A stretch of 64,000 bases of DNA, taken from Macrostomum lignano. Taxonomy: Eukaryota. Location of the stretch: positions 62,001-126,000 of the forward strand of contig NIVC01000882.1 of NCBI GenBank assembly GCA_002269645.1. Direction: 5' to 3'. Below, one piece after another: positions 5,615-59,830 of the stretch. The notes beneath the pieces were generated by a model, which had not been told where the DNA came from, did no database searches, and was given only the letters and a program-made list of their open reading frames with translations. The position numbers and the translations under genes were made by a program. The first letter of the stretch is position 1, and every line of letters starts with the position of its first letter.

Positions 5615-8600
5615 TAATTAATAGATTCACAGGTGTAAGATTCTGAAATAAATAGATTCTCAGATGAGAGATTCTCAAATGAATAGATTTGTAGGTGTGA
5701 TGTTGTCATATGAGAATGGATTCTCAGGTGTGAGATTCTCAAATGAATAGATTCTCAGGTGAGAGATTCTCAAATGAATAGATTCTCAGGTGAGAGATTC
5801 TCAAATGAATAGATTCTCAGGTGTGAGATTCTCAAATGAATAGATTCTCAGGTGTGAGATTCTCAAATGAAAAGATTCTCAGGTGTGAGATTCTCAAATG
5901 AATAGATTCTCATGTGTGAGATTCTCAAATGAATAGATTCTCAGGTGTAAGATTCTCAAATGAATAGATTCTCAGGTGTGAGATTCTCAAATGAATAGAT
6001 TCTCAGGTTTGAGATTCTCAAATGAATAGATTCTCAGGTGTGCGATTCTCAAATGAATAGATTCTCAGGTGTAAGATTCTCAAATGAATAGATTCTCAGG
6101 TGTGAGATTCTCAAATGAATAGATTCTCAGGTGTGAGATTCTCAAATGAATAGATTCTCATGTGTGAGATTCTCAAATGAATAGATTCTCAGGTGTAAGA
6201 TTCTCAAATGAATAGATTTTCATGTGTGAGATTCTCAAATGAATAGATTCTCAGGTGTGAGATTCTCAAATGAATAGATTCTCAGGTGTGAGATTCTGAA
6301 ATAAATAGATTCTCAGGTGTGAGATTCTCAAATGAATAGATTTGTAGGTGTGAGATTCTCAAATGAATAGATTCTCAGGTGTGAGATTCTCAAATGAATA
6401 GATTCTCAGGTGTGAGATTCTGAAATAAATAGATTCTTAGGTGTGAGATTCTCAAATGAATAGATTCTCATGTGTGAGATTCTCAAATGAATAGATTCTC
6501 ATGTGTGAGATTCTCAAATGAACAGATTCTCAGGTGTGAGATTCTCAAATGAATAGATTCTCAGGTGTGAGATTCTGAAATAAATAGATTCTCAGGTGTG
6601 AGATTCTCAAATGAATAGATTTGTAGGTGTGAGATTCTCAAATGAATAGATTCTCAGGTGTGAGATTCTCAAATGAATAGATTCTCATGTGTGAGATTCT
6701 CAAATGAATAGATTCTCAGGTGTAAGATTCTCAAATGAATAGATTTTCATGTGTGAGATTCTCAAATGAATAGATTCTCAGGTGTGAGATTCTCAAATGA
6801 ATAGATTCTCAGGTGTGAGATTCTGAAATAAATAGATTCTCAGGTGTGAGATTCTCAAATGAATAGATTTGTAGGTGTGAGATTCTCAAATGAATAGATT
6901 CTCAGGTGTGAGATTCTCAAATGAATAGATTCTCAGGTGTGAGATTCTGAAATAAATAGATTCTCAGGTGTGAGATTCTCAAATGAATAGATTCTCATGT
7001 GTGAGATTCTCAAATGAATAGATTCTCATGTGTGAGATTCTCAAATGAATAGATTCTCAGGTGTGAGATTCTCAAATGAATAGATTCTCAGGTGTGAGAT
7101 TCTGAAATAAATAGATTCTCAGGTGTGAGATTCTCAAATGAATAGATTTGTAGGTGTGAGATTCTCAAATGAATAGATTCTCAGGTGTGAGATTCTCAAA
7201 TGAATAGATTCTCAGGTGTGAGATTCTGAAATAAATAGATTCTCAGGTGTGAGATTCTCAAATGAATAGATTCTCAGGTGTGAGATTCTCAAATGAATAG
7301 ATTCTCATGTGTGAGATTCTCAAATGAATAGATTCTCATGTGTGAGATTCTCAAATGAATAGATTCTCAGGTGTGAGATTCTCAAATGAATAGATTCTCA
7401 GGTGTGAGATTCTGAAATAAATAGATTCTCAGGTGTGAGATTCTCAAATGAATAGATTTGTAGGTGTGAGATTCTCAAATGAATAGATTCTCAGGTGTGA
7501 GATTCTCAAATGAATAGATTCTCAGGTGTGAGATTCTGAAATAAATAGATTCTCAGGTGTGAGATTCTCGAATGAATAGATTCTCAGGTGTGAGATTCTC
7601 AAATGAATAGATTCTCATGTGTGAGATTCTCAAATGAATAGATTCTCAAGTGTGAGATTCTCAAATAAATAGATTCTCATGTGTGAGATTCTCAAATAAA
7701 TAGATTCTCATGTGTGAGATTCTCAAATGAATAGATTCTCAAGTGTGAGATTCTCAAATAAATAGATTCGCAGGTGTGAGATTCTCAAATGAATAGATTC
7801 TCAGGTGTGAGATTCTCGAATGAATAGATTCTCAGGTGTGAGATTCTCAAATGAATAGATTCTCATGTGTGAGATTCTCAAATAAATAGATTCTCATGTG
7901 TGAGATTCTCAAATGAATAGATTCTCAAGTGTGAGATTCTCAAATAAATAGATTCTCAGGTGTGAGATTCTCAAATAAATAGATTCTCATGTGTGAGATT
8001 CTCAAATGAATAGATTCTCAGGTGTGAGATTCTCGAATGAATAGATTCTCAGGTGTGAGATTCTCAAATTAATAGATTCTCATGTGTGAGATTCTCAAAT
8101 GAATAGATTCTCAGGTGTGAGATTCTCAAATGAATAGATTCTCAGGTGTGAGATTCTCAAATGAATAGATTTGTAGGTGTGAGATTCTCAAATGAATAGA
8201 TTCTCAGGTGTGAGATTCTCAAATGAATAGATTCTCAGGTGTGAGATTCTCAAATGAATAGATTCTCAGGTGAGAGATTCTCAAATGAATAGATTCTTAG
8301 GTGTGAGATTCTCAAATGAATAGATTCTCAGGTGTGAGATTCTCAAATGAATAGATTCTCAGGTGTGAGATTCTCAAATGAATAGATTCTCATGTGTGAG
8401 ATTCTCTAATGAATAGATTCTCATGTGTGAGATTCTCAAATGAATAGATTCTCAGGTGTGAGATTCTCAAATGAATAGATTCACAGGTGTAAGATTCTGA
8501 AATAAATAGATTCTCAGGTGTGAGATTCTCAAATGAATAGATTCACAGGTGTAAGATTCTGAAATAAATAGATTCACAGGTTTAAGATTCTGAAATAAAT

Positions 8601-9456
8601 AGATTCTCAGGTGTGAGATTCTCAAATGAATAGATTTGTAGGTGTGATGTTGTCATATGAGAATGGATTCTTAGGTGTGAGATTCTCAAATGAATAGATT
8701 CTCAAGTGTGAGATTCTCAAATGAATAGATTCTCAGGTGTGAGATTCTCAAATGAATAGATTCTCAGGTGTGAGATTCTCAAATGAATAGATTCTCAGGT
8801 GTGAGATTCTCAAATGAATAGATTTGTAGGTGTGAGATTCTCAAATGAATAGATTCTCAGGTGTGAGATTCTCAAATGAATAGATTCTCAGGTGTGAGAT
8901 TCTCAAATGAATAGATTCTCAGGTGAGAGATTCTCAAATGAATAGATTCTTAGGTGTGAGATTCTCAAATGAATAGATTCTCAGGTGTGAGATTCTCAAA
9001 TGAATAGATTCTCAGGTGTGAGATTCTCAAATGAATAGATTCTCATGTGTGAGATTCTCTAATGAATAGATTCTCATGTGTGAGATTCTCAAATGAATAG
9101 ATTCTCAGGTGTGAGATTCTCAAATGAATAGATTCACAGGTGTAAGATTCTGAAATAAATAGATTCTCAGGTGTGAGATTCTCAAATGAATAGATTCACA
9201 GGTGTAAGATTCTGAAATAAATAGATTCACAGGTTTAAGATTCTGAAATAAATAGATTCTCAGGTGTGAGATTCTCAAATGAATAGATTTGTAGGTGTGA
9301 TGTTGTCATATGAGAATGGATTCTTAGGTGTGAGATTCTCAAATAAATAGATTCTCAGGTGTGAGATTCTCAAATGAATAGATTCTCAGGTGAGAGATTC
9401 TCAAATGAATAGATTCTCAGGTGTGAGATTCTCAAATGAATAGATTCTCAGGTGTG
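5615..9456. repeat. 31-bp satellite array (AGATTCTCAAATGAATAGATTCTCAGGTGTG), about 3.8 kb
   Basis: Direct periodicity; unit contains two AGATTCTCA subrepeats. Confidence 0.97.
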
Positions 9457-9994
9457 CAAACAGAATTAATATTGATAAAATTTTAAAGCAAATATTTACG
9501 GGTGCGAGTAACTCGGCACTCCTCCTTTTCTAGTTCTGCCGCAACAGAGACTGTCCGCTGCTGAGAGTTCCAGGCAGTTTACGGAGGCAATTTAAGCAAC
9601 TCCATGAGAATGGCTTATTTCGTCAATGCAAATATTGGCTAGCTAGCTTTAGCTGTTAAGCCCATCGTCTGCATTGGGCCAGTCATATTTAACCAGCGGG
9701 ACCCAAGCAGACCACTCTGGTGTACGTGGCTGTTTGCTAAAGCTGCCTTACCCGCTGCTGCAGAATGCACACCGACCTGTGTGGTAAGAAATTTGTTCGA
9801 CCGGCAATTTAGGATGGCTAAACAGAGGGATGAATGGATTCTCTTGAACACTCTTCTCTCCCTGACTGCCCGGTTCAGTCCGTGCAGCCGCTGAAGCTGC
9901 ACTTTGCGCTTGTAGGAAAGTTTTGCTGTTGAAGCAGAAACAGGAAGTGTGGTGAGTATTTCTGCTTCATAGTTTAATTCACAGTTGAATCTGA

Positions 9995-11160
9995 TTTAGC
10001 ATGGAATTCCATCTGGTTTGGGTTCCATTTAGCATGGAATTCAACTGAGTTGGGTTCCATTTAGCATGGAATTCAACTGAGTTGGGTTCCATTTAGCATG
10101 GAAATCATCTGATTTGGGTTCCATTTAGTATAGAAACCATCTGATTTGGGTTCCATTTAGTATGGAATTCATCTGATTTGGGTTCCATTTAGCATGGAAA
10201 TCATCTGATTTGGGTTCCATTTAGCATGGAAATCATCTGATTTTGGTTCCATTTAGCATGGAAACCACCTGACTTGGGTTCCATTTAGTATGGAATTCAT
10301 CTGATTTGGGTTCCATTTAGCATGGAAATCATCTGATTTTGGTTCCATTTAGCATGGAAACCACCTGACTTGGGTTCCATTTAGCATGGAATTCAACTGA
10401 TTTGGGTTCCATTTAGTATAGAAACCATCTGATTTGGGTTCCATTTAGTATAGAAACCATCTGATTTGGGTTCCATTTAGCATGGAAATCATCTGATTTG
10501 GGTTCCATTTAGCATGGAAATCATCTGATTTTGGTTCCATTTAGCATGGAAACCACCTGACTTGGGTTCCATTTAGCATGGAATTCAACTGATTTGGGTT
10601 CCATTTAGTATAGAAACCATCTGATTTGGGTTCCATTTAGCATGGAATTCAACTGATTTGGGTTCCATTTAGTATAGAAACCATCTGATTTGGGTTCCAT
10701 TTAGCATGGAATTCAACTGATTTGGGTTCCATTTAGTATAGAAACCATCTGATTTGGGTTCCATTTAGTATGGAATTCAACTGATTTGGGTTCCATTTAG
10801 CATGGAATTCAACTGATTTGGGTTCCATTTAGCATGGAATTCAACTGATTTGGGTTCCATTTAGTATGGAATTCAACTGATTTGGGTTCCATTTAGCATG
10901 GAATTCAACTGATTTGGGTTCCATTTAGCATGGAATTCAACTGAGTTGGGTTCCATTTAGCATGGAAACCATCTGATTTGGGTTCCATTTAGCATGGAAT
11001 TCAACTGAATTGGGTTCCATTTAGCATGGAAATCATCTGATTTGGGTTGCATTTAGCATGGAATTCAACTGAGTTGGGTTCCATTTAGTATGGAATTCAT
11101 CTGATTTGGGTTCCATTTAGCATGGAAATCATCTGATTTGGGTTCCATTTAGTATGGAAG
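9995..11160. repeat. 32-bp minisatellite (ATTTAGCATGGAATTCAACTGATTTGGGTTCC)
   Basis: Direct periodicity (CATGGAAT at 10801 and 10833). Confidence 0.95.
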
Positions 11161-23640: not shown

Positions 23641-25187
23641 GACAATTTCTCTAGATCTCTATCTTCATTGACACTAATAGCTGCAGACATAGATGCATGT
23701 TATAGATAATGAAACTCTAGCAGCCTGAGAAGTGACAATTGCCAAAACAGAAAATGGAGTAACAATACTCAGTTTCTAAATCTTTTTGGTCTGTTTTATC
23801 CCAAAAAACTTTGCCATAAATTTCAACTGAGTAGCTAGCCAGTCAGTCATCTGCTTTTGTAGATGAAGGTATAGTGTGGTAAAGCTCAACAAAATTGTTG
23901 ACAGCTTTAAACTTTTTATTCTTTTAGCAAGACTGTTACTTTGCGGCAAATGCTAGGGTTCAAACAAGTACTTGACTTTGTTAAGTTTTGAGCCAAATAC
24001 TTAAGCCTTTTGTGAAAAACTTGACTTTGCCAAGTTGGGATTAGGGAGAAAAGTAGGGTTGATTCAAGTTTTTTAGGACAAAGGGTAATGCGATAGTTAA
24101 AACATTTTTTTATGACTTTGATTAAAAGAAACTGAAAATACAATTCAGTTTATAAGTCTTGAATGTATTCTAATTGTTATTAAATGAGTTAAAATTATGT
24201 TTTTTATTATTTCAGTTTTCAGATAGCATTGGCCATGCCTATTGATAGCTATAAGCTATACTACTTTTGTACACCAGTAATATTATAATAAAATTATTAG
24301 AGTAATAGCATTGCATTGTTGTATGCAATTGTAATGCTTTGTTAACACAAGTAGTTTTATATAATGATTTTTTGTGGTACAAGATCTTTTAATTCCTAGA
24401 GTAGACCCTAGTTCCTTTATTATAGCTTCTAAACTAAAGCCACATTTTACAAATTTCAATATAAAATTTTGGCAGATAGAAATTATACACAGCATTCTAT
24501 ATAAGAATGTTGAGTAAGTCCAAGTTTAGTATTCCATATCAAATTTTTGCATTAGCATATATATTATTAACTTAAATAATGGGCATAGATATAAAAAAAT
24601 CTAATTTCTATGGTATTTTAAACATAAAACATTTTTTCTCCATTGTCCTAATTTGCATAAACAAAAATGGTATATATCGGCAATCAGCATACAAAAAAGA
24701 GTTTTAACAAAAAGTATATTTTTGTATATTTTGAGTGCCCCATGTCTATTGTATTCGCTGCATGGTCTATATTTCTAAAAAATGTATCAAGTTGACAAAT
24801 AGATACAGGTCTAAGCATGTACTTTCAAAGTGAAGCCCTAGCATACACATGCAACTTCCTGAATTTTATCTAGCTGGTGAAACATAGTTTACCATGAAAA
24901 TATTATATGTATGTCTAAAAAGTACTCATATTTAGTTATATATGTAATTTAAATCTTTTTTCTCTTTTGCATCAATTGTTTAATGCTCCATCTGTCTTTG
25001 TTTTTGTAATATATTGTGGATAGGTATGTAGATTTTCATGTTTTTGTATTGTGTACTCTTTGGTTTTTCAACATACCCCTGCCTTGGCAGGGAGTAGGAC
25101 GTTTGCTTGCCAAAGTTTGCTTGCAGGAAATTTGCTTGCCGAAGTTTGCTTGCAGGAAATTTGCTTGCAGGAATTTTGCTTGCCAAA

Positions 25188-27073
25188 GGGGATGTCAACT
25201 TACGCACCAGAATGGAGCCCGAAGTTCAGCTCCGGACCAAACCGACTGCAATCGATAACTTGTCGGCCCAGACGACTAGAATCGCCGAGACATCCCATCC
25301 GGCTCCCTTCCTTGGGGTCCCAGGGGATAAAGGGGATAAAATGGGGATCTCATGTCAACTTAAGGCTCTAGAATGGAGCCCGAAGTTCAGCTCCGGACCA
25401 AACCGACTGCAATCGATAACTTGTCGGCCCAGACGACTAGAATCGCCGAGACATCCCATCCGGCTCCCTTCCTTGGGGTCCCAGGGGATAAAGGGGATAA
25501 AATGGGGATCTCATGTCAACTTAAGGCTCTGGAATGGAGCCCGAAGTTCAGCTCCGGACCAAACCGACTGCAATCGATAAGTTGTCGGCCCAGACGACTA
25601 GAATCGCCGAGACATCCCATCCGGCTCCCTTCCTTGGGGTCCCAGGGGATAAAGGGGATAAAATGGGGATCTCATGTCAACTTAAGGCTCTGGAATGGAG
25701 CCCGAAGTTCAGCTCCGGCCCAAACCGACTGCAATCGATAAGTTGTCGGCCCAGACGACTAGAATCGCCGAGACATCCCATCCGGCTCCCTTCCTTGGGG
25801 TCCCAGGGGATAAAGGGGATAAAATGGGGATCTCATGTCAACTTAAGGCTCTGGAATGGAGCCCGAAGTTCAGCTCCGGACCAAACCGACTGCAATCGAT
25901 AAGTTGTCGGCCCAGACGACTAGAATCGCCGAGACATCCCATCCGGCTCCCTTCCTTGGGGTCCCAGGGGATAAAGGGGATAAAATGGGGATCTCATGTC
26001 AACTTAAGGCTCTGGAATGGAGCCCGAAGTTCAGCTCCGGCCCAAACCGACTGCAATCGATAAGTTGTCGGCCCAGACGACTAGAATCGCCGAGACATCC
26101 CATCCGGCTCCCTTCCTTGGGGTCCCAGGGGATAAAGGGGATAAAATGGGGATCTCATGTCAACTTAAGGCTCTGGAATGGAGCCCGAAGTTCAGCTCCG
26201 GACCAAACCGACTGCAATCGATAACTTGTCGGCCCAGACGACTAGAATCGCCGAGACATCCCATCCGGCTCCCTTCCTTGGGGTCCCAGGGGATAAAGGG
26301 GATAAAATGGGGATCTCATGTCAACTTAAGGCTCTGGAATGGAGCCCGAAGTTCAGCTCCGGACCAAACCGACTGCAATCGATAACTTGTCGGCCCAGAC
26401 GACTAGAATCGCCGAGACATCCCATCCGGCTCCCTTCCTTGGGGTCCCAGGGGATAAAGGGGATAAAATGGGGATCTCATGTCAACTTAAGGCTCTGGAA
26501 TGGAGCCCGAAGTTCAGCTCCGGACCAAACCGACTGCAATCGATAAGTTGTCGGCCCAGACGACTAGAATCGCCGAGACATCCCATCCGGCTCCCTTCCT
26601 TGGGGTCCCAGGGGATAAAGGGGATAAAATGGGGATCTCATGTCAACTTAAGGCTCTGGAATGGAGCCCGAAGTTCAGCTCCGGACCAAACCGACTGCAA
26701 TCGATAACTTGTCGGCCCAGACGACTAGAATCGCCGAGACATCCCATCCGGCTCCCTTCCTTGGGGTCCCAGGGGATAAAGGGGATAAAATGGGGATCTC
26801 ATGTCAACTTAAGGCTCTGGAATGGAGCCCGAAGTTCAGCTCCGGACCAAACCGATTGCAATCGATAACTTGTCGGCCCAGACGACTAGAATCGCCGAGA
26901 CATCCCATCCGGCTCCCTTCCTTGGGGTCCCAGGGGATAAAGGGGATAAAATGGGGATCTCATGTCAACTTAAGGCTCTGGAATGGAGCCCGAAGTTCAG
27001 CTCCGGACCAAACCGATTGCAATCGATAACTTGTCGGCCCAGACGACTAGAATCGCCGAGACATCCCATCCGG
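25188..27073 (+). repeat. Left arm: about 11.7 copies of a 161-bp unit
   Basis: Spurious ORF starts recur every 161 nt (25373, 25534, 25695 ...). Confidence 0.97.
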
Positions 27074-27387
27074 TTTCAAGTGACGAAGCTCTATTCTATT
27101 CGAATATCGCATTAGCGGGTGTATTTTATTTTAGCTATTATATATTGTTTGCATTGTAATATTTCCGTCGTTTAATTTTTCCGGATTTTTGAGAATGTTT
27201 TCGCGGTTTTTATTTGACCACTTTAGGCGAGAGATTTTTGATACTGTGCGTCAAGTATTTGTAGCATTAGTTTAAGTGATATATTTTAAGTGATATATTA
27301 ATGAAGTTAAGGTTTTGGTCAGTTTTTCTTACTTAGTTTTATGACAGGTGCAGATTTGTTGCAGATTGCGTTTTATACTTGCTAGTA

Positions 27388-28040
27388 ATGTCCGATTTTA
27401 CTTGCTCTCAATGTGGTCATCAATTCAGCAAAGCAGCCAATTTGAACCGACATCTCGAAACGACTAGATGTGGTCGCTGCTCATCTGAATCGTCTGGAGC
27501 CTTCGCGCCTCCGAGAAACGCACGAGAGGCGCTTCAGTTTCTTGCGGTCGGTGGTAAGTATGTGAAAGTTTTTTTGAACCCAAACCTTTTTCCACGAACC
27601 GCAAATGAGAAGGAGTTCAAACGTATTTGCGGTCTTAGCTATAGTGATTTCGATAGCTTCTCAGAAATGTTACCAGAAGTATCTCGCCTTCGTATTTTGA
27701 CAAAGCCATCTCGAATATTTTTGTACCTGAAGAAGCTTCGCCAAGGTTGCAGCTTTCAATCATTAGCTTTCGATTTCAACATTTCTGCCCAAAGAGCATG
27801 CGACATTTTTTGGGAGATTGCCAAGGAGCAGTACCTACGGGATCCATATCAACCGAGGTCGATAGCGTCGACTCCGATTCAGACTCTGCTTGAGGAAAAT
27901 GTAGTACGCGATCAATTTATTCTCGGTGTATTTCACACACTACTCAAAGGCAAGAAGCTTGTTCTTCTAGTGGGTGATCATACTTACTTTTATCTCCCTA
28001 AGAGCAGCTCACACCACACGCAAATTCGAACTTACCGGCT
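27388..28040 (+). pseudogene. Truncated transposase: C2H2/C2HC zinc finger, HTH (DDE_Tnp_4-associated type) and start of DDE core
   Basis: MSDFTCSQCGHQFSKAANLNRHLETTRC; IFLYLKKLRQGCSFQSLAFDFNISAQRACDIFW; LVLLVGDHTYFYLPKSSSHHTQIRTY. The ORF then runs directly into the right arm at 28041. Confidence 0.75.
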
Positions 28041-29775
28041 AGGAAGGGAGCCGGATGGGATGTCTCGGCGATTCTAGTCGTCTGGGCCGACAAGTTATCG
28101 ATTGCAATCGGTTTGGTCCGGAGCTGAACTTCGGGCTCCATTCCAGAGCCTTAAGTTGACATGAGATCCCCATTTTATCCCCTTTATCCCCTGGGACCCC
28201 AAGGAAGGGAGCCGGATGGGATGTCTCGGCGATTCTAGTCGTCTGGGCCGACAAGTTATCGATTGCAGTCGGTTTGGTCCGGAGCTGAACTTCGGGCTCC
28301 ATTCCAGAGCCTTAAGTTGACATGAGATCCCCATTTTATCCCCTTTATCCCCTGGGACCCCAAGGAAGGGAGCCGGATGGGATGTCTCGGCGATTCTAGT
28401 CGTCTGGGCCGACAACTTATCGATTGCAGTCGGTTTGGTCCGGAGCTGAACTTCGGGCTCCATTCCAGAGCCTTAAGTTGACATGAGATCCCCATTTTAT
28501 CCCCTTTATCCCCTGGGACCCCAAGGAAGGGAGCCGGATGGGATGTCTCGGCGATTCTAGTCGTCTGGGCCGACAAGTTATCGATTGCAGTCGGTTTGGT
28601 CCGGAGCTGAACTTCGGGCTCCATTCCAGAGCCTTAAGTTGACATGAGATCCCCATTTTATCCCCTTTATCCCCTGGGACCCCAAGGAAGGGAGCCGGAT
28701 GGGATGTCTCGGCGATTCTAGTCGTCTGGGCCGACAAGTTATCGATTGCAGTCGGTTTGGTCCGGAGCTGAACTTCGGGCTCCATTCCAGAGCCTTAAGT
28801 TGACATGAGATCCCCATTTTATCCCCTTTATCCCCTGGGACCCCAAGGAAGGGAGCCGGATGGGATGTCTCGGCGATTCTAGTCGTCTGGGCCGACAAGT
28901 TATCGATTGCAGTCGGTTTGGTCCGGAGCTGAACTTCGGGCTCCATTCCAGAGCCTTAAGTTGACATGAGATCCCCATTTTATCCCCTTTATCCCCTGGG
29001 ACCCCAAGGAAGGGAGCCGGATGGGATGTCTCGGCGATTCTAGTCGTCTGGGCCGACAAGTTATCGATTGCAGTCGGTTTGGTCCGGAGCTGAACTTCGG
29101 GCTCCATTCCAGAGCCTTAAGTTGACATGAGATCCCCATTTTATCCCCTTTATCCCCTGGGACCCCAAGGAAGGGAGCCGGATGGGATGTCTCGGCGATT
29201 CTAGTCGTCTGGGCCGACAACTTATCGATTGCAGTCGGTTTGGGCCGGAGCTGAACTTCGGGCTCCATTCCAGAGCCTTAAGTTGACATGAGATCCCCAT
29301 TTTATCCCCTTTATCCCCTGGGACCCCAAGGAAGGGAGCCGGATGGGATGTCTCGGCGATTCTAGTCGTCTGGGCCGACAAGTTATCGATTGCAGTCGGT
29401 TTGGTCCGGAGCTGAACTTCGGGCTCCATTCCAGAGCCTTAAGTTGACATGAGATCCCCATTTTATCCCCTTTATCCCCTGGGACCCCAAGGAAGGGAGC
29501 CGGATGGGATGTCTCGGCGATTCTAGTCGTCTGGGCCGACAACTTATCGATTGCAGTCGGTTTGGGCCGGAGCTGAACTTCGGGCTCCATTCCAGAGCCT
29601 TAAGTTGACATGAGATCCCCATTTTATCCCCTTTATCCCCTGGGACCCCAAGGAAGGGAGCCGGATGGGATGTCTCGGCGATTCTAGTCGTCTGGGCCGA
29701 CAAGTTATCGATTGCAGTCGGTTTGGTCCGGAGCTGAACTTCGGGCTCCATTCTGGTGCTTAAGTTGACATCCCC
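28041..29775 (-). repeat. Right arm: about 10.8 copies of the 161-bp unit, inverted
   Basis: Reverse complement of the left-arm unit. Confidence 0.97.
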
Positions 29776-30420
29776 TTTTGCGTGCAGGAATTTTGCTTGC
29801 CAAATTTTGCTTGCAGGAAATTTGCTTGCCAAATTTTGCTTGCAGGAATTTTGCTTGCCAAATTTTGCTTGCAGGAAATTTGCTTGCCGAAGTTTGCTTG
29901 CAGGAAATTTGCTTGCCGAAGTTTGCTTGCAGGAAATTTGCTTGCCGAAGTTTGCTTGCAGGAAATTTGCTTGCCGAAGTTTGCTTGCAGGAAATTTGCT
30001 TGCCGAAGTTTGCTTGCAGGAAATTTGCTTGCCGAAGTTTGCTTGCAGGAAATTTGCTTGCCGAAGTTTGCTTGCAGGAAATTTGCTTGCCGAAGTTTGC
30101 TTGCAGGAAATTTGCTTGCCGAAGTTTGCTTGCAGGAAATTTGCTTGCCGAAGTTTGCTTGCAGGAAATTTGCTTGCCGAAGTTTGCTTGCAGGAAATTT
30201 GCTTGCCGAAGTTTGCTTGCAGGAAATTTGCTTGCCGAAGTTTGCTTGCAGGAAATTTGCTTGCCGAAGTTTGCTTGCAGGAAATTTGCTTGCCGAAGTT
30301 TGCTTGCAGGAAATTTGCTTGCAAGAATTTTGCTTGCTGAATTTTGCTTGCCAAATTTTGCTTGCAGGAACTTTGCTTGCCGAAGTTTGCTTGCAAGAAC
30401 TTTGCTTGCGGAATTTTGAT
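29776..30420. repeat. 29-bp satellite (GAAGTTTGCTTGCAGGAAATTTGCTTGCC)
   Basis: Direct periodicity; the long Cys/Lys/Gln-rich ORFs here are translation artefacts. Confidence 0.95.
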
Positions 30421-30989
30421 GTCTGCTTCCTAGAAATTTCCTAGAATTTGCTTGTTTTGATTGCTTGTGAAGTTGGTCAGTCAATTATTACTTACTACAG
30501 TCTACAGATGCTTTGCAAGTGGATTCTTATCAGCATCAACATAAACTAACTTGACACTAAGCTTTCAAACTAGGCTTACAGAGTTTCATTCTAAGAATTT
30601 AGTATATAAAAATGATTAGAGATTTAGTATAGGTAATTGGGATTGGTAATAGTATAAATCTTTGTAGTTCCTGATTTCAGCACGATTGAGCAGGTATGAT
30701 AATTGCAGTGATGCTAATGTATAATAATGCATATACTAATGATAATTAGTATATAAAAATGTAAACGCACTTGGACTGGCGGATTTGCACGAGTACTAGT
30801 GTAGTGTACTTGCCACCGAGGAACAAAAGTTAAAATACATTTGTAGAACCGAAAGTTCCGTGGAGTTTCGAAAGTTTCTGCTTTATGGCTAAAATCATAA
30901 CACTATATAGGCGACTTCCACAAATCTTAGAAACTGAAAATTAGAAATACAAGAGCTCAAAAAAGGTTCCGCAAGAAAGCTTTTCCTAG

Positions 30990-31760
30990 CAAACCTCGTC
31001 AAGCAAAATTTCTGCAAGCAAACTTCAACAAGCTTATGTGCAGCAAGCAAATTTCGGCTAACAAATTTCCTGCAAGCAAAATTCGGCAAGCAAAATTTCT
31101 GCAAGCAAAGTTCCTGCAAGCAAAGTTCCTGCAAGCAAACTTCGGCAAGCAAAGTTCCTGCAAGCAAAGTTCCTGCAAGCAAACTTCGGCAAGCAAAGTT
31201 CCTGCAAGCAAAGTTCCTGCAAGCAAACTTCGGCAAGCAAAGTTCCTGCAAGCAAAGTTCCTGCAAGCAAAGTTCCTGCAAGCAAACTTCGGCAGGCGAA
31301 ATTCCTCAAGCAAAGTTCGGCAGGCGAAATTCCTCAAGCAAAGTTCGGCAAGCAGACTTCGGAAAGCAAAAAGTTCGGCATGCAAAGTTCGGCAAGCAAA
31401 GTTCGGTAGGCGAAATTCCTCAAGCAAAGTTCGGCAAGCAGACTTCGGAAAGCAAAAAGTTCGGCATGCAAAGTTCGGCAAGCAAAGTTCGGTAGGCGAA
31501 ATTCCTCAAGCAAAGTTCGGCAAGCAGACTTCGGAAAGCAAAAAGTTCGGCATGCAAAGTTCGGCAAGCAAAGTTCGGTAGGCGAAATTCCTCAAGCAAA
31601 GTTCGGCAAGCAGACTTCGGAAAGCAAAAAGTTCGGCATGCAAAGTTCGGCAAGCAAAGTTCGGCAAGCAGACTTCGGAAAGCAAAAAGTTCGGCATGCA
31701 AAGTTCGGCAAGCAAAATTTGGCAAGCAAAGTTCCTGCAAGCAAACTTCTCGCAAGCGAA
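30990..31760. repeat. Inverted, more complex version of the same satellite (GCAAGCAAAGTTCCT / GCAAGCAAACTTCG)
   Basis: Reverse complement of the TTTGCTTGC core. Confidence 0.92.
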
Positions 31761-32120
31761 TTTCATAGACCCGCCTTGGCCACTGTCAACCTGGGCTGGA
31801 TCGTATTGGTATAAAATGCTAGTTCTATTTTGCTTAGGCCAATATTATTTAATTTATGTGCATCAGTTTGGGTATATATATATATCATTATATGGCTATG
31901 AATAGAAAATACTATTGCAACTATGTGTTCTTGCCTATGACTTTGCCTATGTTATGAGGTCCCTGTTTTAACAAAACTCGAATGCATGCATATATTATAA
32001 AAAATGAATAGACTAAACTTCCATTTCACCAACTGTCAATATATGTTACAATACTTGGTGCAGTAATCTTACAATGCTACTGGAGCTTATAGAATATGAC
32101 ATCAAATTTCTAATTCAGCC

Positions 32121-34333
32121 ATGGTGAAGGGAGACAAGCGCAAATGGAAGGAGGGCTTCTTTGAGAAGCTCACCGCTTTGCTCAGCGAATACTCTAAGAC
32201 CTTCATTGTTAGCGTTGACAATGTCGGCTCCAAGCAGATGCAGCAGATCCGGCAGTCAATGCGCAATGAAGCCGTGATCCTCATTGGCAAGAACACCATG
32301 ATCAGGAAGGTGGTCCGGGCTATGCTAGACGACCATCCCACCCTGGAGAAGCTGCTGCCCCACATCCGGCTGAATGTTGGCTTCGTGTTCACCAACCAGG
32401 ATCTGAACGAGGTGCGCAAGAAGATCGAAGGCAATCAGGTGGCCGCCCCGGCCAGGGCCGGCTCCATTGCACCCTGCGACGTAGTGGTGCCCGCCCAGAA
32501 CACCGGCCTGGGACCTGAGAAGACCAGCTTCTTTCAGGCGTTGAACATTCAGACTAAGATTACGCGCGGTACTATTGAAATCTTGTCTGACGTGCCGCTG
32601 ATTAAGAAGAATACTAAGGTAAGCAGTGTCTAATAGGGACTTGGGTTTAAGCATCCGCCAGGTATTTATTTGTAACCACGCAACCGTTAAGGCTACTACT
32701 TAGGATACAGGCTACGGATACTGATTGTTATATGGATATTTGGGAGATACTGATTAGCCAAGGGATATTTGGTGGCTACAGATTGGCTGAGAGATATTTG
32801 CGGGATACTGATTGGCTAAGGGATATTTGGGGGATGCTGATTGGCTGAGGGGTATTTGGTGGCTACTGATTGGCTGAGGGATATTTGCGGGATGCTGATT
32901 GTCTGAGGGATATTTGGGGGCTACTGATTGGCTGAGGGATATTTGCGGGATGCTGATTGTCTGAGGGATATTTGGGGGCTACTGATTGGCTGAGGGATAT
33001 TTGCGGGATGCTGATTGTCTGAGGGATAGTTGGGGGCTAATGATTGGCTGAGGGATATTTGGGGGCTACTGATTGGCTGAGGGATATTTGGTGGCTACTG
33101 ATTGGCTGAGGGATATTTGCGAGATGCTGATTGTCTGAGGGATATTTGCGGGATGCTGATTGTTTGAGGGATATTTGGGGGCTACTGATTGGCTGAGGGA
33201 TATTTGCGGGATGCTGATTGTCTGAGGGATAGTTGGGGGCTAATGATTGGCTGAGGGATATTTGGGGGCTACTGATTGGCTGAGGGATATTTGGTGGCTA
33301 CTGATTGGCTGAGGGATATTTGCGAGATGCTGATTGTCTGAGGGATATTTGCGGGATGCTGATTGTTTGAGGGATATTTGGGGGCTACTGATTGGCTGAG
33401 GGATATTTGGGGGCTACTGATTGGCTGAGGGATATTTGCGGGATGCTGATTGTCTGAGGGATATTTGGGGGCTACTGATTGGCTAAGGGATATTTGGGGG
33501 CTACGGATTGGCTGAGAGATATTTGGGAGATACGGATTGGTTGAGGGATATTAGGGGGCTAATGATTGGCTGAGGGATATTTGAGGACTACTGATTGGCT
33601 GAGGGATATTTGCGGGATGCTGATTGTCTGAGGGATATTTGGGGGCTACTGATTGGCTGAGGGATATTTGCGGGATGCTGATTGTCTGAGGGATATTTGG
33701 GGGCTACGGATACAAAGTTCAGCGACTGTCTGAACTCTGCTTAGCAGTTTCTTTTATCGTTAATCGTGTTTTTAATTTTATTTCATCATTCAGTGCTCAT
33801 CGGACTGCTCTATCCGATTTTTGAATCAAACTTCCCCAGCAATTTTTACCTATAGTTGAGACGTTCATCAACAACACACGCAGGTCGGCCAGTCCGAGGC
33901 TACCCTCCTGAACATGCTGAAGATTTCGCCGTTCTCCTACGGCCTCAGGATCCGGCAGGTGTACGACAACGGCAGCGTGTTCGGGCCACAGGTGTTGGAC
34001 ATTCGCGACGAGGACATCGTGACGAGATTCTTGGCTGGCAGTCGCCGAGTCGCCGCCCTGTCGCTGCAGCTGGGCACCCCGACTCTGGCCTCGGCGCCTC
34101 ATTCAATTGTCAACGCGTTCAAGCGTTGCCTAGCGGTTGCCGTGGAAACCGACTACGAGTTCCCGTTGGCCAAGACTGTCAAAGAGTATCTGAAAGATCC
34201 CAGCAAGTTTGCCGCCGCCGCCCCGGCCGCCGCTCCGGCCGCCGCCGCCGCTGCCCCGGCCGCCAAGGAGGCGAAAAAGGAAGAGAGCTCGGAGGAGTCG
34301 GACGATGATATGGGAATGTCGCTGTTCGACTGA
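32121..34333 (+). CDS. RPLP0: 60S acidic ribosomal protein P0 (uL10). Exons 32121-32618, 33884-34333; 315 aa
   Basis: [54 protein letters not shown], Ala-rich hinge and [18 protein letters not shown]-terminus; phase-0 GT-AG intron. Confidence 0.98.
32755..33710. repeat. 29-bp minisatellite (GATTGGCTGAGGGATATTTGGGGGCTACT) in RPLP0 intron
   Basis: Direct periodicity. Confidence 0.95.
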
Positions 34334-37887: not shown

Positions 37888-39214
37888 ATGGAGCTGCCAG
37901 ACGTGACCTACAATAAGCCCGAGTACATCGAGACCGCTTCTGGCAATAAGGTCTGCCGATTAACGGCCCTCTGTGGCAGTCAGAATATTGTACTTTCTGG
38001 CAAGGTCATCATCCAAACCGAAGCCGTGATCCGCGGCGACCTCGCCAATGTGCGAATCGGCCGCAGCACCGTCATCAGCCGGGGTGCCGTCATCCGGCCT
38101 CCGTTTAAAAAGTTTAGCAAGGGCGTCGCATTCTTCCCCTTGTACATTGGCGATCACGTGTTCATTGGCGAGAATTCCGTTATCAATGCTGCGCAGGTGC
38201 GTCTCGCCTCTGGGTGTAATGGCTTTTTGTTCTCTTTTGCTGGCCCCCACCAGCCTCCCAGATCCTCAGTTGCTGGGCGACCGCCAGCCTCTCAGATCCC
38301 CAGTTGCTGGGCCAGCCTCCCAGATCCTCAGTTGCTAGGCCAGCCTCTGAGATCCTCAGTTGCTGGGCCAGCCTCGCAGATCCTCAGTTGCTGGGCCAGC
38401 CTCGCAGATCCTCAGTTGCTGGGCGACCGCCAGCCTTTCAAATCCTCAGTTGCTAGGAAAGCCTCCCAGATCCTCAGTTGCTTGGCCAGCCTCCCAGATC
38501 CTCAGTTGTTGGGCCAGCCTCCCAGATCCTCAGTTGCTAGGCCAGCCTCTCAGATCCTCAGTTGCTGGGCCAGCCTCGCAGATCCTCAGTTGCTGGGACA
38601 GCCTCCCAGATCCTCAGTTGCTGGGACAGCCTCCCAGATCCTCAGTTGCTGGGCCAGCCTCGCAGATCCTCAGTTGTTGGGCGACCGCCAGCCTTTCAGA
38701 TCCTCAGTTGCTAGGACAGCCTCCCAGATCCTCAGTTGCTGGGCCAGCCTCCCAGATTCTTAGTTGCTGGGCCAGCCTCCCAGATCCTCAGTTGCTCGGC
38801 CAGTGCCGCCCTCCCAAGCCCCCAGTTGCTTGGCTGGCCTCCTAAATCCTCAGTTGCTGGGTCAGCCTCCCAGATCCCCATTGGCTGGACCGCGGCGGCT
38901 GCCCTCCCATATTTCTAGGCAAGCACTAGCACAAAGGTACTCTCACTGCCCATTACCAGGTGGGCTCCTACGTCCACGTAGGCAACAACTGCGTGATTGG
39001 CAGGCGCTGCGTTCTCAAAGACTGCAGCGCAGTGGCCGACGGCTCAGTCCTGCCAGCGGAGACCGTGGTGCCACCCTTCACCATATTCAGCGGCTCGCCA
39101 GGACAGCTGGTTGGCTCGCTGCCAGACTGCACACCGGAGCTCATGACTCACCTCACCGAGAGCTACTATCAGCACTTCGTGCCTGCAGCCGCGGCGGCTC
39201 CCAAAGCTAACTAA
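37888..39214 (+). CDS. DCTN5: Dynactin subunit 5 (p25). Exons 37888-38196, 38960-39214; 187 aa
   Basis: [70 protein letters not shown] (left-handed beta-helix); phase-0 intron. Confidence 0.96.
38230..38900 (+). repeat. 28-bp minisatellite (CAGATCCTCAGTTGCTGGGCCAGCCTCC) in DCTN5 intron
   Basis: Direct periodicity; same family as 39705-40205 (inverted) and 46570-47435. Confidence 0.93.
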
Positions 39215-39704: not shown

Positions 39705-40205
39705 GTCTGAGGATCTGGGAAAGTGGCAGGTGGACTAGCAACTGAGGATCTGGGAGGCTGGCCCAGAAACTGAAAATCTGGGAGGCTGGCCCAGCAACTG
39801 AGGATCTGGGAGGGTGGCAGGTGGCTCAGCAACTGAGGATCTTGGAAACTAGCGCAGCAACTAAGGATATTGGAGACTGGCCCAGCAACTGAGGATCTGG
39901 GAGGGTGGCAGGTGGCTCAGCAACTGAGGATCTGGAAAACTAGCGCAGCAACTGAGGATATTGGAGACTGGCCCAGCGACCGAGGATCTGGGAGGGTGGC
40001 AGGTGGCTCAGCAACTGAGGATCTGGGAAACTAGCGCAGCAACTGAGGATATTGGAGACTGGCCCAGCAACTGAGGATCTGGGAGGGTAGCAGGTGGCCC
40101 AGCGACCGAGGATCTGGGAGGGTAACCTGGTGGCCCAGCAACTGAGGATCTGGGAGGCTGGCCCAGCAACTGAGAATCTGGGAGGGTGGCCCAGCAACTA
40201 AGGAT
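39705..40205 (-). repeat. Inverted copy of the 28-bp minisatellite family
   Basis: GGCCCAGCAACTGAGGATCTGGGAGG is the reverse complement of the DCTN5 intron unit. Confidence 0.9.
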
Positions 40206-40543
40206 CTCAGACGTGCCCACGGGCCACCATCGATAAAAACTGTAAAATAAAAGTACCAGGTATTTAAAACATTGGTAGCCCTAGCAGTCTGGGGCCGTTA
40301 CGGCTATCCCACACCTGACTATTTAGAAAGCTTACAGAGACCGGATTCTAGGCTCCGAGGGGGTGGTGAAGCGAGCCGTCCCAGATGTGAACTCAGCAAT
40401 AGACTTCATGATAGACTCTAATCCTAGAGACACACGTTGACACTAGTCCTGACCTCTACAAAAAGTACAACAAAACGCTCTTATTCTCTACTTTCAGGCT
40501 GGCGTCCGGCCAATTTTTAGTTGCAGGCAAAAATCCAGCCGCC

Positions 40544-44649: not shown

Positions 44650-45472
<823 letters not shown>

Positions 45473-46569
45473 GCCTTCTTATTTGTGCAGCTACCGGTAA
45501 ATATCCAAAAAGTTTATAATAGTCAATAAAGCGGCTTTCTAACAATTATATTGATGATAAATAAACCATTGCAGCTGAAAAACATTACTAGATAATTATC
45601 AGTGATTTGTACTCTAACCGAAAACGCCAGGAGTTTACATAAGCAGCCATGGAAATGGAAATCTATGAAATATTTCATATTTAGCATTGATTATTATGAA
45701 GCTGTGGCGTCAGCATCTAGCTAATAGCATTGGGTTTTGATGTTCAGTAAGCCTCTGTGTATTCGGTGTTGTTCAACTTGCTTAATTGATTTTCGACTTA
45801 ATCAGAGCTACCGGCAATCATATTTAGTCATAATTATAATTATTTTTAAAGATGATTTCAAGTGCCAATTCCCTTGAATCACCGGTATTGTTTTAAACAG
45901 TAATAATTTATTTATTTATAGTGCCACATTTCTCTCCAGTTTTACCTTGTCTCTTGTTCATTTTAGGTAGTTATATTTTTTAACTCTTTTCTTAATTCGG
46001 TTTCTTTCAATTTGAATTATTGCTGTCAGGATACTAAGTAGGTTAAACATATTTTCGCGTGCTAAGCTAAGATTCTTAGTTATTTTTATCTTATTAAGTG
46101 CGACTTTTTTCCCTTAATGTTCAGTCAGTAGCAGTGTTGGAAGTTCGTGTTAATTCTTATTGATAATCTGCTTCCATCATAACCCGAATTTCACTGGTAG
46201 AGCATCAGAATTTCACTGCTCGCTTGCATAATAAATGCAAAACTGCACCCGGCAACGATTGCTTTTAGAAGATATATGGCACTATTTACATATACTTTGC
46301 GTCAAAATGGATGTAGTCGGAGCCTCGCTGCATGCCAATTTTATCGGTTGTAGTATGCTTACATGCATTATTAACCAATGCCTTGCCATTGCGCTGTACG
46401 AATTATGCGGTTTTTTAACAAAATAAATGCAAACATTTTGCCAATATTGTTTTCCAACTCAATTAGTCTGTGCCTGCTTGCCTGGCCGTGCTGTCAATCT
46501 TGCTGTCTGCATCACTGCTGCTTTTTATTTTGCGATGCTCAGAACATATTTGTTCAGAGAGCGTCTACT

Positions 46570-58680: not shown

Positions 58681-59830
58681 GGGTCACCGACTTTTCACTG
58701 CCACAGTTTAACTCCTGGACCTTTGACTGCCAGACTTTTGACTGCCGGCGACTTTTGACTGCCAGACTTTTGACTGCCGGACTTTTGACTGCCAGACTTT
58801 TGACTGCCGGACTTTTGACTGCCAGACTTTTGACTGCCAGACTTTTTGGCTGCCAGACTTTTGACTGCCAGACTTTTGACTGCCAGACTTTTGATTGCCG
58901 GAAATACCACATTATACTTGTTCTTATTTATGATTAGTTAGTACTTTTAATCAATAAGCGATCGATAAATGAATACGAATTCGCTAATTCAGTCATCATT
59001 AGTCGTAACTGTGAATTAGTCAATTAGTAATTATAAGTTAACAATAACAACAATCTTAGAAATAAGACTTGTTTATTATTGTTGAGATGCCCCAAAAACC
59101 TTTGGAATGGGGAAATTAAACCTACTAAATTCATATTCTCAGAATTATTCAGGGATTGAAATATCTTCTGCAGCCATTTCATGGGCTGACGTCTCATATA
59201 TTTACTCATTCACTATATTCACTCGCTATCACTACATGCTGTTTCTGTGCCTCCCTCGTAAAAAGATCTCCTTCCACCTATTCAAGAATCTCCTGCATCG
59301 CCCAAGTAAACTGTCCTCTGGCTCCGTTCTGTAGATTCTCCTCCCAGCCCAACTGTAAAATGAAAAGATGACTAGGCAGTCAAAAGTCTGGCAGTCAAAA
59401 GTCTGGCAGTCAAAATCGCTGGCAGTCAAAAGTCTGGCAGTTAAAATACCGGCAGTCAAAAGTCTGGCAGTCAAAAGTCTGGCAGTCAAAAGTCTGGCAG
59501 TCAAAAGTCTGGCAGTCAAAAGTCTGGCAGTCAAAAGTCCGGCAGTCAAAAGTCCGGCAGTCAAAAGTCCGGCAGTCAAAAGTCCGGCAGTCAAAAGTCC
59601 GGCAGTCAAAAGTATGGCAGTCAAAAGTATGGTAGTCAAAATCGCTGGCAGTCAAAAGTCTGGCAGTCAAAAGTCTGGCAGTCAAAAGTCTGGCAGTCAA
59701 AAGTCTGGCAGTCAAAAGTCCGGCAGTCAAAAGTCCAGAAGTCAAAAGTCCAGAAGTCATTGTGGCAGTCAAAATCGCCGGCAGTCAAAAGTCCAGAAGT
59801 CAAATTGTGGCAGTCAAAAGTCGGTGACCC
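58681..59830. mobile_element. Non-autonomous foldback-like element with arms of 15-bp units (CTTTTGACTGCCAGA) in inverted orientation
   Basis: Termini GGGTCACCGACTTTT(C/G)ACTGCCACA inverted at both ends; arms 58681-58900 and 59370-59830 around an about 470-bp non-coding spacer. Confidence 0.85.

Follow-up and report, generated by a model that had tools for sequence, protein, structure and literature searches.

A probable deleted transposon of PIF/Harbinger-ISL2EU-Spy type with foldback arms of 161-bp tandem units at an AAA/TTT site in Macrostomum lignano

Integration without duplication of the target site is rare among eukaryotic cut-and-paste transposons. The Spy group is defined operationally by insertion between AAA and TTT without such a duplication. 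Blunt integration was proposed for it (PMC4122938) and later confirmed in cells for cgSpy, and Spy has of late been turned into a tool for gene transfer (PMC11304231). The terminal inverted repeats (TIRs) of Spy are highly variable in length, from 9 to 1,474 bp, and the long ones are stated to be without subrepeat structure (PMC4122938); a later listing gives 5-691 bp and names arthropods, cnidarians and molluscs as hosts (PMC11304231). ISL2EU elements have been reported as the sister group of Spy. Long inverted arms with internal tandem repeats are known from other systems, among them Galileo and the Foldback-type elements of several superfamilies. Both features occur together at one locus of the flatworm Macrostomum lignano (contig NIVC01000882.1 of assembly GCA_002269645.1), within the stretch from 62,001 to 126,000 that was analysed here; this 64-kb stretch is called the window, and all coordinates are positions in it. 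The element at 25188-29775 is probably an internally deleted copy of a duplication-free, foldback-armed transposon belonging to the PIF/Harbinger-ISL2EU-Spy (PHIS) type.

Boundaries, arms and target site of the element

The element spans exactly 25188-29775 (4,588 bp), the boundaries given in the original prediction, with GCCAAA as the left half of the target site at 25182-25187 and TTTTGC as the right half at 29776-29781, both in the register of a surrounding 29-bp repeat that is restored exactly once the element is removed. It consists of a left arm of 1,886 bp (25188-27073, plus strand), a unique core of 967 bp and a right arm of 1,735 bp (28041-29775, minus strand), with the arms inverted relative to each other. 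Each outer end is formed by a 32-nt terminus, GGGGATGTCAACTTA[C/A]GCACCAGAATGGAGCC, which occurs only at 25188-25219 on the plus strand and at 29744-29775 on the minus strand, with none expected in shuffles. The left copy reads GGGGATGTCAACTTACGCACCAGAATGGAGCC, the right copy differs from it at one of the 32 bases, and both carry GGGGATGTCAAC.

Tandem Repeats Finder (TRF) resolves the left array (25192-27073) into 11.7 copies and the right array (28041-29771) into 10.8 copies of a 161-bp period, each with 99% matches and no indels, and the two arrays are reverse-complementary to each other at 99% over up to 1,766 nt. Together with the arm alignment and a unit-by-unit layout, this gives 11 full units and a part unit of 115 bp on the left, and 10 full units and a part unit of 125 bp on the right. 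Internal unit junctions read ...GGGGATAAAGGGGATAAAATGGGGAT/CTCATGTCAACTTAAGGCTCTGGAATGGAGCC, in which the terminus recurs in degenerate form, altered by an insertion of 4-5 nt and several substitutions. As the internal units carry these degenerate copies, the arms are tandem copies of the terminal domain itself. Every unit also contains three GGGGAT motifs 5' of the degenerate terminus copy and one inverted GGGATGTC. The order of the point variants C49, G72 and T59 is roughly mirrored between the arms, although the left arm is one unit longer and several units differ from arm to arm; these differences in unit number and variants indicate that the arms were once identical and have since diverged slightly through point mutations and the gain or loss of units. 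The repetitive TIRs of Galileo are described as behaving likewise. A single 161-bp unit showed no unusual fold (z = -1.0), and the formation of a cruciform or a hairpin RNA by the arms is speculation.

Between the arms, a unique AT-rich leader (27074-27387, plus strand), presumed to hold the promoter and 5' untranslated region, runs from the left arm to the start codon of a truncated transposase gene (27388-28035, plus strand), of which the N-terminal 216 aa are present. The open reading frame (ORF) itself extends from 27388 to 28077 and thus into the right arm, with its stop codon at 28075-28077. The remnant comprises a C-x2-C-x12-H-x5-C zinc finger, a helix-turn-helix (HTH) resembling HTH_Tnp_4 and the first catalytic Asp (LLVGDHTYFY); in Pfam, the reading frame matches zf-C2H2 (E 4e-4) and HTH_Tnp_4 (E 1.2e-5), both under the gathering scores. 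Since homology to every relative ends at 28035, only the five bases CGGCT (28036-28040, plus strand) short of the right arm, this copy is internally deleted at that junction and non-autonomous, a point not spelled out in the original prediction. A second ORF was not seen in the element; in a deleted copy it could have been lost. The TRF arrays, the 967-bp core and the Pfam matches bear out the predicted architecture of arms of about 1.9 and 1.7 kb, built of one 161-bp unit, around an ORF with a zinc finger, an HTH and the start of a DDE domain. With long inverted arms of tandem subrepeats, a short core and nearly identical inverted ends, as also predicted, the data support a transposon with definite boundaries, whose foldback-type arms repeat a single unit in tandem.

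Joining the flanks produces a run of 29-mers, TTTTGCTTGCAGGAA(A/T)TTTGCTTGCCAAA, in exact register, with the junction ...GCCAAA / TTTTGC..., and GCCAAATTTTGC is found intact five times in the neighbouring repeat, one of these in the opposite arm of the surrounding structure. Direct repeats of 1-28 or 30-40 nt flanking the element were not found, and the sole near-match between the flanks is the trivial 29-nt repeat period (27/29). As the 29-bp register is intact upon removal, zero target duplication is the simplest reading, and the clean restoration of the site claimed in the original prediction holds. Among junctions, AAATTT has a share of 0.12% over the whole window and of 3.3% within the host arm.

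Alternatively, the element could be of ISL2EU or PIF/Harbinger type, with a 2-3-bp duplication that mutation or rearrangement of the repeat array later erased. The N-terminal zinc finger has a counterpart in ISL2EU (a THAP finger there), ISL2EU TIRs begin with GG, and their target, A|AT|T, comes close to AAATTT. However, the flanks are AAA and TTT rather than AT/AT or TWA/TWA, and an additional 2 or 3 bp would break the 29-bp register, so that such a duplication is contradicted by the intact register; in addition, a metagenomic relative (L002, see below) likewise has AAA directly at its terminus. An erased duplication is therefore given hardly any weight.

Near-perfect inverted repeats on the kilobase scale are also the classic form of an assembly artefact, and the assembly, which is built on PacBio data and has known redundancy, represents a genome very rich in repeats. 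The locus might accordingly be a foldback chimera generated by a missed SMRTbell adapter, or a mis-joining of repeats. A missed-adapter chimera, however, is a palindrome about a single point, whereas here the entire asymmetric coding core lies between arms that are unequal both in length (11.7 vs 10.8 units) and in variant order. Moreover, the outer ends are specific termini unlike the internal units, joining both junctions re-establishes the exact register of the host repeat, and the same terminus is found in an unrelated metagenomic contig beside a homologous gene. An artefact is a highly unlikely explanation.

A metagenomic relative and the transposase lineage

The best evidence on the nature of the terminus comes from L002, a JGI metagenome contig that was found via protein homology and not via DNA. 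It encodes P0002, the closest full-length relative of the flatworm transposase (560 aa, 45% identity, E 1.8e-56 in HMMER). Approximately 800 bp upstream of the start codon, L002 reads cttAAA|GAGGATGTCAACTTAGGC, in the same orientation as in M. lignano. The terminus GRGGATGTCAACTTA is common to both; 14 of the first 15 nt match, and the 13-mer GGATGTCAACTTA is identical. AAA directly precedes the L002 terminus, while its frequency in that contig is 1.3%. No tandem array lies between the L002 terminus and the gene, only weak colinear matches to the M. lignano arm (GGAGAAAATGGG, then ATTTTTTCGGATTTTT), and the leader shares a weak 16-nt match, ATTTTTCCGGATTTTT, with the equivalent region of L002. 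By this comparison, the roughly 11 units of M. lignano would seem to correspond to one unit-equivalent in L002. Terminus, AAA flank and absent array together indicate that the terminus is a family property, that the AAA flank is no accident of the satellite, and that the arms are a lineage-specific amplification. At 2580-2582 of L002, an in-frame TGA occupies the position of a conserved Trp (E-N-W in relatives). As homology continues past it into a SWIM-like region, the true protein is longer than 560 aa; the TGA probably reflects a TGG-to-TGA nonsense mutation or, less likely, a genetic code in which TGA is read as Trp.

L002 also bears on the possibility that the arms are not parts of a mobile unit at all but a palindromic host satellite of 161-bp arrays, in which a transposase fragment landed or was captured. 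At least three other inverted tandem-repeat pairs are present in the window, which makes palindromic blocks of repeats a common feature of this genome, and the gene is only a fragment. Against this, both outer ends consist of the same specific 32-nt sequence, inverted, at a precise break in the surrounding repeat, and a homologous terminus precedes the L002 transposase gene, in the same orientation to the gene. In addition, every unit derives from the terminus, and the 161-bp unit has no further occurrence in the window. A host satellite is thus very unlikely.

Within the window, tblastn and motif searches did not find a second copy of the element. Exact look-ups of a 122-aa ORF from the arm and of the 229-aa transposase ORF in protein databases gave no match, and the sole database protein sharing words with the ORF is the gene model of the same locus (L001, identical to the window); the locus of this model matches the element at 100% along its full 4,588 bp. 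The shared terminus GNGGATGTCAACTTANGC had 114 matches when metagenome contigs were scanned at the DNA level. None of them adjoins a PHIS-type gene, and AAA flanks three of the 114, which is the background rate; the scan therefore adds no flanks to a test of the target site. About 45 of the matches belong to an unrelated insertion sequence of the IS6 family. This IS6-like clade (among L006-L119) comprises elements of about 700 bp from peat and sediment metagenomes that encode a 194-aa IS6-family-like transposase (for example L016 30-728, L095 2618-3333 and L009 395-991), with 8-bp target duplications in three of seven complete copies. Their inverted repeats begin with GAGGATGTCAACTTAAG, near-identical to the first 17 nt of the flatworm terminus; as the transposases are unrelated, this likeness probably arose by chance or by convergence.

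An exhaustive HMMER search with the N-terminal 216 aa against 1.84 billion representative proteins produced 54 matches, of which about 15 align across the region from the HTH to GDHTY. Wherever the source of a relative was looked up, it was environmental (Tara Oceans/ENA, GOS, JGI, Logan). The relatives range from 560 to about 1,090 aa, and the longer ones, when aligned, share a zinc finger, a variable acidic linker, the HTH, a DDE core and a C-terminal C..C..G.R..GCCSHV motif, which resembles a SWIM finger and has no Pfam match. The C-x2-C-x12-H-x5-C pattern is conserved among them, HTH_Tnp_4 is matched in several, and DDE_Tnp_4 reaches 27.4 and 32.4 bits in P0007 and P0010 (cut-off 24.8). 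As the copy in the window holds only the HTH and the first D, the published signature of IS5, PIF/Harbinger, ISL2EU and Spy, D(19-29)K(29)D(18-40)D(11-19)P(18-28)R(3)E (PMC4122938), was sought in the relatives. Six of the seven checked show the succession DHTY, K, GDGNL, 37-39 residues, DxGY, P, 19-27 residues and RxxxE, with the P-R distance fitting for at least one candidate proline, while the remaining one, P0005, lacks such a proline where it would be expected. The matches to HTH_Tnp_4 and DDE_Tnp_4 and the D..K..D..D..P..R(3)E pattern support a placement within PHIS, in line with the affinity originally proposed. The transposase thus appears to represent a divergent and so far undescribed branch of this assemblage of IS5-like DDE transposases, set apart by comparison with published descriptions.

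Other searches reached no further. The matches listed from profile searches of a 5.8-billion-protein index comprised just the queries and the proteins nearest to them, with no named relative and none of known taxonomic position. No relative emerged when metagenome contigs were scanned with a protein pattern, and no solved structure related by sequence was found. Two Tara Oceans relatives, L004 and L005, have no terminal inverted repeats within their contigs, and since their shared homology ends at an apparent intron-exon boundary, they are uninformative on target sites. P0025 (1,048 aa, from ENA marine metagenomes) carries a C-terminal ubiquitin C-terminal hydrolase (UCH) domain (E 2.8e-12); the N-terminal region of P0017 looks UCH-like by eye, with no UCH match in Pfam.

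Tentatively, the element and its environmental relatives might constitute a seventh, undescribed PHIS group, in which duplication-free integration between AAA and TTT either evolved separately from that of Spy or goes back to the origin of a larger Spy/ISL2EU-like radiation, and in whose flatworm members the whole terminal domain was amplified to kilobase-scale tandem arrays. If this were true, a second and structurally different lineage with the same target behaviour could tie particular protein features to blunt, AAATTT-specific integration, and would extend the host range of such integration to flatworms.

The ancestral element may have possessed a single terminal domain of about 150-160 bp, as is still the case in the metagenomic relative. 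Unequal exchange or slippage during replication could have amplified this domain, and the arms would be kept 99% alike by exchange with each other. Perhaps the repeated terminus-like and GGGGAT motifs provide multiple binding sites for the transposase, by analogy with the THAP sites in the repetitive TIRs of Galileo, with GGGGAT and ATGTCAACTTA as candidate motifs for binding by the zinc finger or the HTH. By analogy with Spy, both 3'-OH ends might be joined at opposite, non-staggered positions in AAATTT upon integration, so that no duplication would result, and a full-length copy at another genomic site could mobilise the deleted one in trans. With one copy in the relative and about 11 here, the locus offers a clean example of a terminal domain amplified to foldback arms. 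Such amplification bears on the seeding of satellite DNA by transposons and on the repeat-rich, hard-to-assemble genome of M. lignano.

Several points speak against interpreting the element as a deleted PHIS-type, duplication-free, foldback-armed transposon. The spacer between D and P measures 49-56 residues in the relatives vs the published 11-19 for all described PHIS groups, and their D(93-95)D(80-102)E spacing likewise departs from all of these groups; the assignment to PHIS is made from domain matches and the signature. The AAA|TTT rule rests on one complete insertion and the 5' flank of one distant relative, as the right end of L002 lies beyond its contig, with the TTT flank out of view. 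In a tandem array, a one-period duplication of 29 bp (27/29 match) is formally possible. The unit count of the arms is that of the PacBio-based assembly. Both the binding-site role of the repeated motifs and blunt integration are proposed by analogy only. Finally, the analysis covers a single copy, so that mobility and the genome-wide generality of AAA|TTT insertion are presumptive.

Surrounding repeats and the ribosomal protein P0 gene

The repeat next to the element had been described as a plain host satellite. It does carry the matching empty site, but it is one arm of another inverted-repeat structure, which extends over 25098-31764. In this structure, a 29-bp-repeat arm interrupted by the element (25098-25187 and 29776-30418) is 82% complementary over about 730 bp to a second arm at 30967-31764, and an AT-rich spacer of about 550 bp (30419-30966) lies between the two. 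As the insertion took place inside one arm of this pair, the element is nested in another foldback-like structure, which is a second and older one. GCCTTGGC is present just beyond both of its outer ends. It may represent a target duplication of 8 bp; as it is nearly palindromic, it may instead belong to the inverted repeat.

Further inverted pairs are found in the window. One is made of 28-bp tandem repeats (38250-38802 and 39707-40211, about 80% complementary) and another of 15-bp tandem repeats (58689-58901 and 59421-59705, about 91% complementary), with spacers of about 0.5-0.9 kb; the outer ends of the 15-bp pair match and read GGGTCACC|GACTTTT. Foldback-like minisatellite pairs seem to be common in this genome region. 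The window as a whole is rich in distinct mini- and microsatellite arrays (69 TRF rows, for example at 1108-2054, 5616-9456, 9994-11159 and 44651-45473), one of which contains 124 copies of a 31-bp unit. This abundance fits the 15% of simple and tandem repeats reported for the M. lignano genome.

The element lies about 2.3 kb upstream of the gene for ribosomal protein P0 (RPLP0), and the two are joined in an NCBI gene model. This model, BOX15_Mlig000285g3 (marked partial), uses a GTAAGT splice donor inside the transposase frame (27554-27559, plus strand) and splices 27469-27553 to 32116-34333. The donor reads G|GTAAGT at 27553/27554, and the acceptor reads ttctaattcag|CC ATG at 32115/32116, two bases 5' of the P0 ATG; the intron spans the right arm and the repeats. 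The gene model opens with 28 residues of the transposon frame, followed by the P0 coding sequence. Locally, the element thus contributes an exon that is spliced to the ribosomal protein P0 gene in this model, and if the transposon's own in-frame ATG were used, a predicted zinc-finger-P0 fusion frame would result.

Comparison with known systems

The element resembles Spy in its insertion exactly between AAA and TTT without target-site duplication (one insertion and half of another), in an IS5/PHIS-type DDE transposase with an N-terminal HTH, in a single transposase gene as far as visible, in a terminus that starts with GG and in the great variability of TIR length among Spy elements. The original prediction had called it Spy-like, and this holds for the target site, while DDE spacing, zinc finger and end motif do not fit canonical Spy. 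It is possible, although rather doubtful, that the element is a genuine member of the Spy clade, with its transposase nested among those of insect, mollusc and cnidarian Spy and the repetitive TIR as the sole addition. The target site, the single-frame gene with its N-terminal HTH, Spy TIRs of up to 1,474 bp and the initial GG would be in accordance with this. The D(93-95)D(80-102)E spacing of the relatives, however, lies outside the D(79-80)D(44-62)E of Spy, and most Spy transposases are without a zinc finger, whereas the family of the flatworm transposase has a C2HC-type finger and a SWIM-like C-terminus. The Spy end motif 5'-GGANNNNG-3' is also unmatched by the termini, which read GGGGATGT... 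in M. lignano and GAGGATGT... in L002; here GGA stands two bases inward and is followed by TGTCA, not NNNNG. Furthermore, none of the relatives with a known source in the HMMER search comes from an annotated insect, oyster or Hydra genome. The arms, with about 11 tandem 161-bp units, contrast with the subrepeat-free TIRs of Spy. Reported hosts of Spy are arthropods, molluscs, cnidarians and one rotifer, with flatworms not among them; a link of Spy to flatworms was not found in the literature, and the M. lignano genome and piRNA papers contained nothing specific on such an element.

With ISL2EU, the element shares an N-terminal zinc-binding domain followed by HTH and DDE domains, TIRs starting with GG and an AT-rich palindromic target. 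ISL2EU differs in its 2-bp AT duplication, its THAP finger and a second ORF with a YqaJ exonuclease domain, whereas the flatworm element has AAA and TTT flanks, a zf-C2H2-like finger (Pfam, no THAP) and no YqaJ ORF. Similarly, neither the 3-bp TWA duplication nor the Myb/SANT second ORF of PIF/Harbinger is present, although the latter could have been lost with the deletion.

The arms find their counterparts elsewhere. Galileo is likewise a DDE transposon with long TIRs that contain internal direct tandem repeats (PMC3573991, PMC3688188), in copy numbers that are unequal between the two TIRs of one copy. Its repeats carry secondary transposase-binding sites, as shown for the THAP sites, and its longest arms occur in non-autonomous deletion derivatives. 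Galileo belongs, however, to the P superfamily (Drosophila), with a THAP-containing P-type transposase and 7-bp duplications, and it has two to three repeats of about 210 bp in TIRs of up to about 1.26 kb, compared with about 11 repeats in arms of 1.7-1.9 kb here. Foldback elements in the strict sense (FB of Drosophila; Tetris, PMC4079207; Tm1, PMC3169594) likewise have a short core flanked by kilobase-scale inverted arms of tandem units. The TIR-220 unit of Tetris arose by duplication of part of the terminal domain (PMC4079207), as did the 161-bp unit from the terminal domain here. These elements have an assigned or suspected Mutator/MULE affinity, 8-10-bp duplications and mostly no transposase remnant, in contrast to the PHIS-type remnant and the lack of duplication in the flatworm element, which accordingly lacks the features of the FB/MULE group.

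As foldback architecture is already held to have arisen independently in several superfamilies, the flatworm element represents no new principle. Foldback arms and duplication-free insertion between AAA and TTT are each known separately, but neither their combination, in agreement with what had been claimed, nor such a transposase lineage was found described in the searchable literature. The element is Spy-like at its target site and like Galileo, Tetris and FB in the architecture of its arms.

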